A DNA stretch of 64,000 nucleotides from Heteronotia binoei (Eukaryota). Below, piece after piece: positions 34,150 through 34,633 of the stretch. The translations under genes were made by a program, and so were the position numbers. The stretch is from positions 23,870,001-23,934,000 of the forward strand of contig NC_083238.1 in the NCBI RefSeq assembly GCF_032191835.1, in the 5' to 3' direction. Below the pieces are notes generated by a model that saw only the letters and a program-made list of their open reading frames with translations, did not search any database and was not told the origin of the DNA. Within the stretch, counting starts at the first letter, position 1. Each line of letters opens with the position of its first letter.

Positions 34150-34633
34150 GGGGAGGGACGGTGGCTCAGTGGTAGAGCATCTGCATGGGAAGCAGAAGGT
34201 CCCAGGTTCAATCCCTGGCATCTCCGAAAAAGGGTCCAGGCAAATAGGTGTGAAAAACCTCAGCTTGAGACCCTGGAGAGCCATGAATGGGGCTGTGGCT
34301 CAGTGGTAGAGCATCTGCTTGGTAAGCAGAAGGTCCCAGGTTCAATCCCCGGCATCTCCAAAAAAGGGTCCAGGCAAATAGGTGTGAAAAACCTCAGCTT
34401 GAGACCCTGGAGAGCCATGAATGGGGCTGTGGCTCAGTGGTAGAGCATCTGCTTGGGAAGCAGGAGGTCCCAGGTTCAATCCCCGGCATCTCCAACTAAA
34501 AGGGTCCAGGCAAATAAGTGTGAAAAACCTCCGCTTGAGACCCTGGAGAGCCGCTGCCAGTCTGAGAAGACAATACTGACTTTGATGGACCAAGGGTCTG
34601 ATTCAGTATAAGGCAGCGTCATATGGTCATATG
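34150..34633 (+). mobile_element. Head-to-tail trimer of the tRNA-headed SINE with a single 3' tail
   Basis: Three ~133-bp units joined by GAGAGCCATGAATGGGGCTGTGGCTCAGTGG; only the last unit carries the tail. Confidence 0.93.

Follow-up and report, generated by a model that had tools for sequence, protein, structure and literature searches.

Two Squam2 SINE Arrays of Heteronotia binoei Share One Joint and May Descend from a Retroposed Multimeric Source

Two short tandem arrays, a trimer and a tetramer, lie within a 64,000-nucleotide stretch of the Heteronotia binoei genome (the window), and each is built from the head and body of a Squam2 SINE, closed by a single SINE tail. In both arrays, the units are connected by the same joint, which is absent from the monomeric Squam2 copies of the window. 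To explain this arrangement, we favor, with slightly more confidence than doubt, a history in which the joint originated once, a source copy carrying at least two units was transcribed by Pol III, the transcript was inserted by a LINE, and the arrays then grew in place. The retroposition step is one that we infer from two loci that are 18 kb apart.

Anatomy of the Arrays

The trimer array (34161-34552, plus strand) was detected by TRF in the window as a repeat with a period of 134, 2.9 copies, and 96% matches, and the tetramer array (16273-16731, minus strand) as a repeat with a period of 123, 3.7 copies, and again 96% matches. A first-pass annotation of this DNA had called the two loci "unlinked", a description that has to be abandoned, as they are located on one contig, 18 kb apart and inverted relative to each other. 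When they are read in the sense direction, both arrays follow a common plan, in which a single leading head, GGGGAGGGACGGTGG, precedes internal units of head plus body, and these are followed by one tail starting GCTGCCAGTCTGAG. Thus, the shared architecture that had been proposed, namely one head, a repeated head and body, and one tail, is confirmed by TRF together with sense reading. The head plus body, which represents the front two-thirds of the SINE, is present three times in the trimer and four times in the tetramer (an internal repeat count of two and three, respectively), and the repeat units of 134 and 123 nt compare with about 215 nt for the whole SINE. In both arrays, the internal units start with ATGAATG(G/C)GGCTGTGG and stop at GAGAGCC.

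The trimer begins with a leading unit of 133 nt (34150..34282, plus strand), which consists of the species-type head GGGGAGGGACGG, a tRNA-like region containing the A and B boxes, and the body up to GAGAGCC (Rfam tRNA, 52 bits). It is followed by internal unit 2 (34283..34416, plus strand; 134 nt), which starts with ATGAATGGGGCTGTGG, ends with GAGAGCC, and scores 64.3 bits with Rfam tRNA, and by internal unit 3 (34417..34552, plus strand; 136 nt; Rfam tRNA, 61 bits), which has private changes that include AACTAAAAGGG. The single LINE-derived region and tail (34553..34635, plus strand) contains short TCATATG-like repeats. The tetramer also begins with a leading unit of 133 nt (16642..16774, minus strand), in which the anticodon arm is full (Rfam tRNA, 51.6 bits). 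Its three internal units of 123 nt each (16641-16519, 16518-16396, and 16395-16273, minus strand) start with ATGAATGCGGCTGTGG, and in each, an identical 11-nt stretch of the anticodon arm is missing; it is this deletion in units 2-4 that gives the tetramer its period of 123 rather than 134. The single LINE-derived region and tail of the tetramer (16190..16272, minus strand) is about 96% identical to that of the trimer. Within the tetramer, units 1 and 3 (16642-16774 and 16396-16518) carry AAAACCCTC, while units 2 and 4 carry AAAAACCTC, an alternation that hints at a two-unit duplication or at an exchange inside the array.

Identity of the Element and its Pol III Features

Both the arrays and the monomers are identified as Squam2 SINEs. 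The element opens with a tRNA-like head, continues with a body ending ...CCTGGAGAGCC and with a LINE-derived region, and closes with a tail made up of short TTCATRTG-like repeats. Comparison by eye with the gecko Squam2 consensus (PMC10702118, supplement 6) reveals the same order and long identical stretches in the head, the body end (GAGACCCTGGAGAGCCGCTGCCAGTC), and the tail. Thus, the features that define Squam2 are present: a tRNA-derived head with A and B boxes and, as judged by eye, a body and a LINE-derived region like those of the published gecko consensus.

The unit heads are called tRNA-like by ARAGORN and by Rfam. All seven array units have an intact box A (TGGCTCAGTGG) and an intact box B (GGTTCAATCCC), which are 32 nt apart except in the deleted units of the tetramer, where the spacing is 21 nt. 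The internal heads, which begin GGGGCTGTGG, correspond to the canonical Squam2 5' end, and they score 64 and 61 bits with Rfam tRNA versus 52-53 bits for the leading head and a monomer. Box A starts at position 13 in the leading unit and at position 14 in the internal units; consequently, the ATGAAT "linker" is a replacement of the 5-nt G-rich leader, GGGGA, rather than an added insert. Because ATGAAT stands in place of this leader, an internal unit spans the stretch from the expected start of Pol III transcription as far as the point at which the body gives way to the LINE region. In keeping with this, the unit starts about 12-13 nt before box A, at the predicted Pol III start, and ends at GAGAGCC, where the body meets the LINE region. 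Reading of both loci also upheld the claim that the sense strands of the two arrays are free of runs of four or more T residues; measured from the start of the element, the first such run occurs at 655 nt for the tetramer and at 1108 nt for the trimer.

The Joint and the Monomeric Copies

The joint in both arrays reads GAGAGCC-ATGAATG(G/C)GGCTGTGG. A search of the window with the 31-nt joint pattern yielded five matches with no mismatches, two in the trimer and three in the tetramer, compared with a chance expectation of zero, and there was no further match in the window even when up to three mismatches were allowed. The pattern likewise gave 0 matches in metagenome, prokaryote-genome, and viral DNA collections, as would be anticipated for collections that include no gecko genome. 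The joint had been said to be common to the arrays and absent from four monomers, and this proved correct, as all five exact matches lie inside the arrays. When the trimer was compared with the window by BLAST, the matches were to these four monomers and to one old Squam2 fragment (60985-61107), all of which are without the joint.

As comparators, the four monomers serve the argument in lacking the joint, but only two of them are young. One of these (33598..33813, minus strand) is inverted and lies 340 bp upstream of the trimer, and the other is located at 46273..46482 (plus strand). The remaining two (39107..39311 and 25819..26018, both on the plus strand) are old copies, with about 75% identity to the units. 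Two positions distinguish the arrays from the young monomers. GGTGTG(A/G)AA is found in all seven array units, whereas both young monomers have GGCGTGAAA (GGTGTG versus GGCGTG), in agreement with what had been reported earlier. After box B, six of the seven array units, including the leading unit of the tetramer, have CCCCGG, whereas every monomer of the window has CCCTGG. Since both are CpG sites, they represent weak markers. The presence of GGTGTG in both leading units, together with CCCCGG in that of the tetramer, argues that the leading units belong to the lineage of the arrays.

The last unit of the trimer (34417-34552) has the AACTAAAAGGG / AACTAAAA form, as does the inverted monomer 340 bp upstream (33598-33813), and the remaining array units have an A-run form at the place where unit 3 has AACTAAAAGGG. 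Local gene conversion between SINE copies may account for the presence of AACTAAAAGGG in both unit 3 and the neighboring monomer. Identity across the two loci is 98-99% for internal units, 96.2% for leading units, and about 96% for tails, with counts that are too few for significance. A tree of units against monomers did not yield a separate branch for the arrays. In this maximum likelihood tree of unit bodies, all of the young copies, arrays and young monomers alike, fall in one fork and make up one young subfamily.

A Single Origin for the Joint and Growth in Place

A plain duplication would put GAGAGCC next to SINE sequence. Instead, the joint contains a 6-7-nt non-SINE stretch followed by the head variant GGGGCTG; these are alike at both loci and unlike the leading heads of the loci themselves. 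Because the same ATGAAT and the same head variant are found at both, the joint, judged from its sequence, must have had one origin and have subsequently spread to both loci. The earlier argument that the same joint is unlikely to have arisen twice is therefore supported.

The number of units, on the other hand, appears to have changed locally. All of the tetramer joints have C at the variable base, and both trimer joints have G. Since the 11-nt deletion and the C are confined to the tetramer and the G to the trimer, at least part of the unit number was gained after the lineages split, most simply at the present loci. These observations support growth in place, and they agree with the suggestion that unit number varied after dispersal. 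If so, a source copy with two units would be enough for both arrays.

A Model for the Dispersal of the Arrays

In the model that we favor, a Squam2 variant would carry a head plus body module that is tandemly repeated ahead of one LINE-derived tail. The first joint formed once. It could have arisen when reverse transcriptase, at the 5' end of a SINE RNA, jumped to a second such RNA or, alternatively, by a second insertion that is targeted to the tail and is followed by loss of the LINE-derived region; the sequence CCATGAA, which is like the ATGAAT filler, is found in the tail of an old monomer. Pol III would then transcribe a source copy of two or more units, reading through all of them, and the partner LINE would insert this transcript at new sites. 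After insertion, the internal unit count would shift in place by slippage or unequal exchange, much as in a minisatellite. That Pol III read through the units, that a LINE carried out the insertion, and how large the source copy was are points that we infer from the sequence.

Retroposition with local expansion fits best because of the complete SINE ends, the intact promoters, the lack of an internal terminator, and the occurrence of one unit type at many Gekko loci. Further support for a retroposed source comes from the finding that both arrays, like the monomers, open with a complete head, here of the species type, and close with one complete tail. Other observations speak against the model. 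Neither array has convincing target site duplications, as the best shared words are only 5-6 nt long and are not flush with the ends: a 6-mer situated 3 nt away from the tetramer head and a 5-mer situated 10 nt away from the trimer head. In the young monomers, possible 6-mer duplications adjoin the head; about 0.3 such 6-mers would be present by chance. No 5'-truncated copies of an array were found, with two loci in the window.

A separate observation concerns the sites of insertion. ATT is present directly before the head, or no more than 2 nt away from it, in four of the six Squam2 copies (flanks at 16775, 33814, 39106, and 46272), and Squam2 tails end in CATATG/CATATT-like repeats. Together, these features suggest that microhomology with the tail guides the choice of target, a behavior that would fit a partner LINE of the CR1/L2 type.

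The model could be carried further. It is conceivable, although rather doubtful, that there is a Squam2 lineage whose active source is itself multimeric. Such a Pol III "VNTR-SINE" would move as a whole and give rise to SINE-derived satellites. If this is true, then, with unit limits that agree within 1-2 nt with those of sSat2Gja1 in Gekko japonicus, either gekkonid geckos have had a multimeric source lineage in common over tens of millions of years, or such joints are made repeatedly at a mechanistic hotspot, for example through a jump of reverse transcriptase from the 5' end of a SINE RNA to a processed head plus body RNA.

Other Explanations for the Shared Joint

Because there are only two loci, and these are 18 kb apart, a local process at the level of DNA could also have been responsible. 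The leading candidate is ectopic gene conversion or non-allelic recombination, in which the array would have been copied, with no RNA step, into a plain monomer 18 kb away, using the head and the tail as homology arms. The nearness of the loci on one contig is compatible with such an exchange. So is the finding that identity between the loci is highest for the internal units (98-99%) and lower for the leading units (96.2%) and the tails (96%), a difference that does not reach significance with such small counts. In addition, there are signs of exchange among these copies, namely the occurrence of AACTAAAA both in unit 3 of the trimer and in the inverted monomer 340 bp away and the occurrence of AAAACCCTC in units 1 and 3 of the tetramer. 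However, the states of the array lineage are also found in the leading units (GGTGTG in both and CCCCGG in that of the tetramer), which lie outside the tract that would need to be converted. Furthermore, the homology arms would be short, about 130 and 210 nt, and conversion alone explains poorly the equivalent unit that is present at many G. japonicus loci. On balance, we regard conversion as a real alternative, although an unlikely one.

A second possibility is that the repeats spread as a satellite at the level of DNA, for example through excised circles of units that are re-inserted or amplified by a rolling-circle process, as has been proposed for other satellites. This would be in line with the view that such repeats are nascent satellites, with a subtelomeric preference and homogenization (PMC10702118). 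However, both arrays are placed exactly between a complete SINE head and a complete SINE tail, a position that circles of internal units would not give, and we assign this explanation only a slim chance.

Segmental duplication, which had been set against the retroposition reading from the start, can be rejected because the flanks are not homologous. When the 3-kb flanks on both sides of the trimer were compared with those of the tetramer, set in the orientation of the element, there was no homology at the element borders, and the sole matches were short, were to other dispersed repeats, and were far from the element ends. Nothing but the proximity of the loci speaks for such a duplication or for an assembly artefact, both of which would also have to accommodate the private substitutions in the units and the differences between the arrays in period and in joint base; an explanation of this kind is thus very improbable. 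Finally, independent local duplications that arrived at the same joint by coincidence are the least credible alternative and are likewise rejected, since the unit borders do fall on natural landmarks (the Pol III start and the end of the body at the LINE region) and are met again within 1-2 nt in G. japonicus, but this would not produce an identical non-SINE filler and an identical head variant at both loci.

Surroundings of the Arrays

Near the start of the window lies the last exon of TBR1, seen as a GC-rich ORF (5177-6532, plus strand) that is matched by Pfam T-box_assoc and by TBR1 proteins of lizards and geckos. The T-box_assoc match is found in two overlapping frames (ORFs from 5177 and 5370), reflecting either GC-rich, low-complexity sequence that matches in both frames or a frame problem in the exon. 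The arrays are about 10 and 28 kb downstream of this exon, no other gene was identified around them, and nothing suggests that they have a function.

Several other repeats are present. A LINE reverse transcriptase ORF with 598 uninterrupted amino acids (Pfam RVT_1; 34799-36660, plus strand) follows the trimer at a distance of 160 bp, on the downstream side, and passes at its 3' end into a (GA)n tail. The 3' end of a second copy of this LINE (60523-60912, plus strand) encodes the same C-terminal peptide and has a (GA)23 tail. This (GA)n-tailed family may have been active recently; its tail is unrelated to that of Squam2. At 20418-20458 (minus strand), the 3' end of a different repeat has the TGATGGACCAWTGGTCTG motif of the Squam2 LINE-derived region, and this repeat possibly depends on the same LINE clade for its mobility. 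The sequence that adjoins the tetramer on its upstream side, on the opposite strand (16795-16920, plus strand), resembles, by eye, the head of a 5S-rRNA-derived SINE, with no Rfam 5S match at E values up to 1.

The first-pass annotation had also likened the Squam2 tail to a CR1 3' end in this window. No such end was found in the window, where there were only partial matches of 19-44 nt. A fragment at 43082-43357 (plus strand; ORF FAEDTKLGG...) resembles a CR1 reverse transcriptase but was not matched by Pfam at E 0.01, and the sequence near it contains no CR1 3' end similar to the Squam2 tail.

Relationship to SINE-Derived Satellites and Composite Elements

The SINE-derived satellites sSat1-3 have been described in 56 squamate genomes (Vassetzky, Kosushkin, and Ryskov 2023, PMC10702118), so the earlier statement that SINE-derived tandem repeats were already reported in squamates is accurate; H. 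binoei was not part of this set. Those derived from Squam2 occur mainly in geckos (PMC10702118). In Gekko japonicus, the major variant, sSat2Gja1, accounts for 79% of the sSat2 loci and has a unit of 139 nt, and a second variant has a unit of 115 nt (PMC10702118), compared with 134 and 123 nt here. The consensus unit of sSat2Gja1 begins GAGGGGCTGTGGCTCAG and ends ...CCTGGAGAGCTGTAAA (PMC10702118, supplement 6), and it is composed of a head and body that are broken at GAGAGC, after which a 6-nt filler leads into the canonical 5' end (PMC10702118). At most sSat loci, the terminal unit extends to the end of the SINE, and both SINE ends are kept in a minor class; unequal recombination is the favored mechanism, and dimeric Squam SINEs are not reported (PMC10702118).

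The similarity to the present arrays is extensive. In each case, the family is Squam2, and the unit is a head plus body that breaks at GAGAGC(C) and is followed by a 6-7-nt filler and then by the canonical 5' end GGGGCTGTGG, with breakpoints that, by eye, are within 1-2 nt of each other. Both also depart from the SINE consensus after box B, with CCCCGG in place of CCCTGG, and both have a terminal unit that reaches the SINE end. Thus, as in sSat2, a part shorter than the SINE is repeated head to tail and the last unit runs to the SINE terminus; here, both termini are present at both loci. There are also differences. The filler is TGTAAA in sSat2Gja1 and ATGAAT here, and the body has subfamily changes that are particular to this species. 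In addition, the loci here are short, with two or three internal units, and keep both SINE ends, which is the minor variant in PMC10702118. The working threshold in that study was at least four middle monomers, a size above that of the present loci, and shorter loci are a class that is mentioned but unanalysed there. On these features, the two arrays are classed as short loci of the published sSat2 type.

A joint common to dispersed loci is consequently not new in kind, since the sSat2Gja1 unit, with a filler of its own, is common to most G. japonicus sSat2 loci. The novelty that had been claimed for dispersal of the multimer is therefore reduced, as a shared joint at many loci was already on record; the mode of its spread was not. 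To the known phenomenon, the present work adds one gecko and one unit variant. The route by which SINE-derived satellites reach hundreds or thousands of loci was left unexplained in PMC10702118, and short loci that have kept both SINE ends and a recognizable joint filler are the best material for settling how such arrays spread.

Complex SINEs that retropose as units are known, and include the dimeric/trimeric class to which Alu belongs and the t-SINE/CYN family of colugos (PMC3531059). Like these, the present arrays have several tRNA-like Pol III modules per element and are proposed to spread as one transcript. However, complex SINEs join complete or nearly complete SINEs, the combination that defines the class in SINEBase, and their module number is fixed; in the arrays, only the last unit has the LINE-derived region and the tail, and the number of units varies. 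Under the SINEBase definitions, an internal duplication makes no new family (PMC3531059). The arrays are thus placed outside the complex SINEs, as variants of Squam2 whose repeated part lies ahead of a single SINE end.

A final parallel is provided by a composite element. SVA is a composite retroposon with an internal VNTR; it is transcribed by Pol II and mobilized by L1, and the VNTR itself is without a promoter. As in SVA, the model proposed here involves a mobile element with an internal tandem repeat that varies in copy number after insertion. Unlike the VNTR of SVA, however, every repeat unit of the Squam2 arrays has a Pol III promoter.
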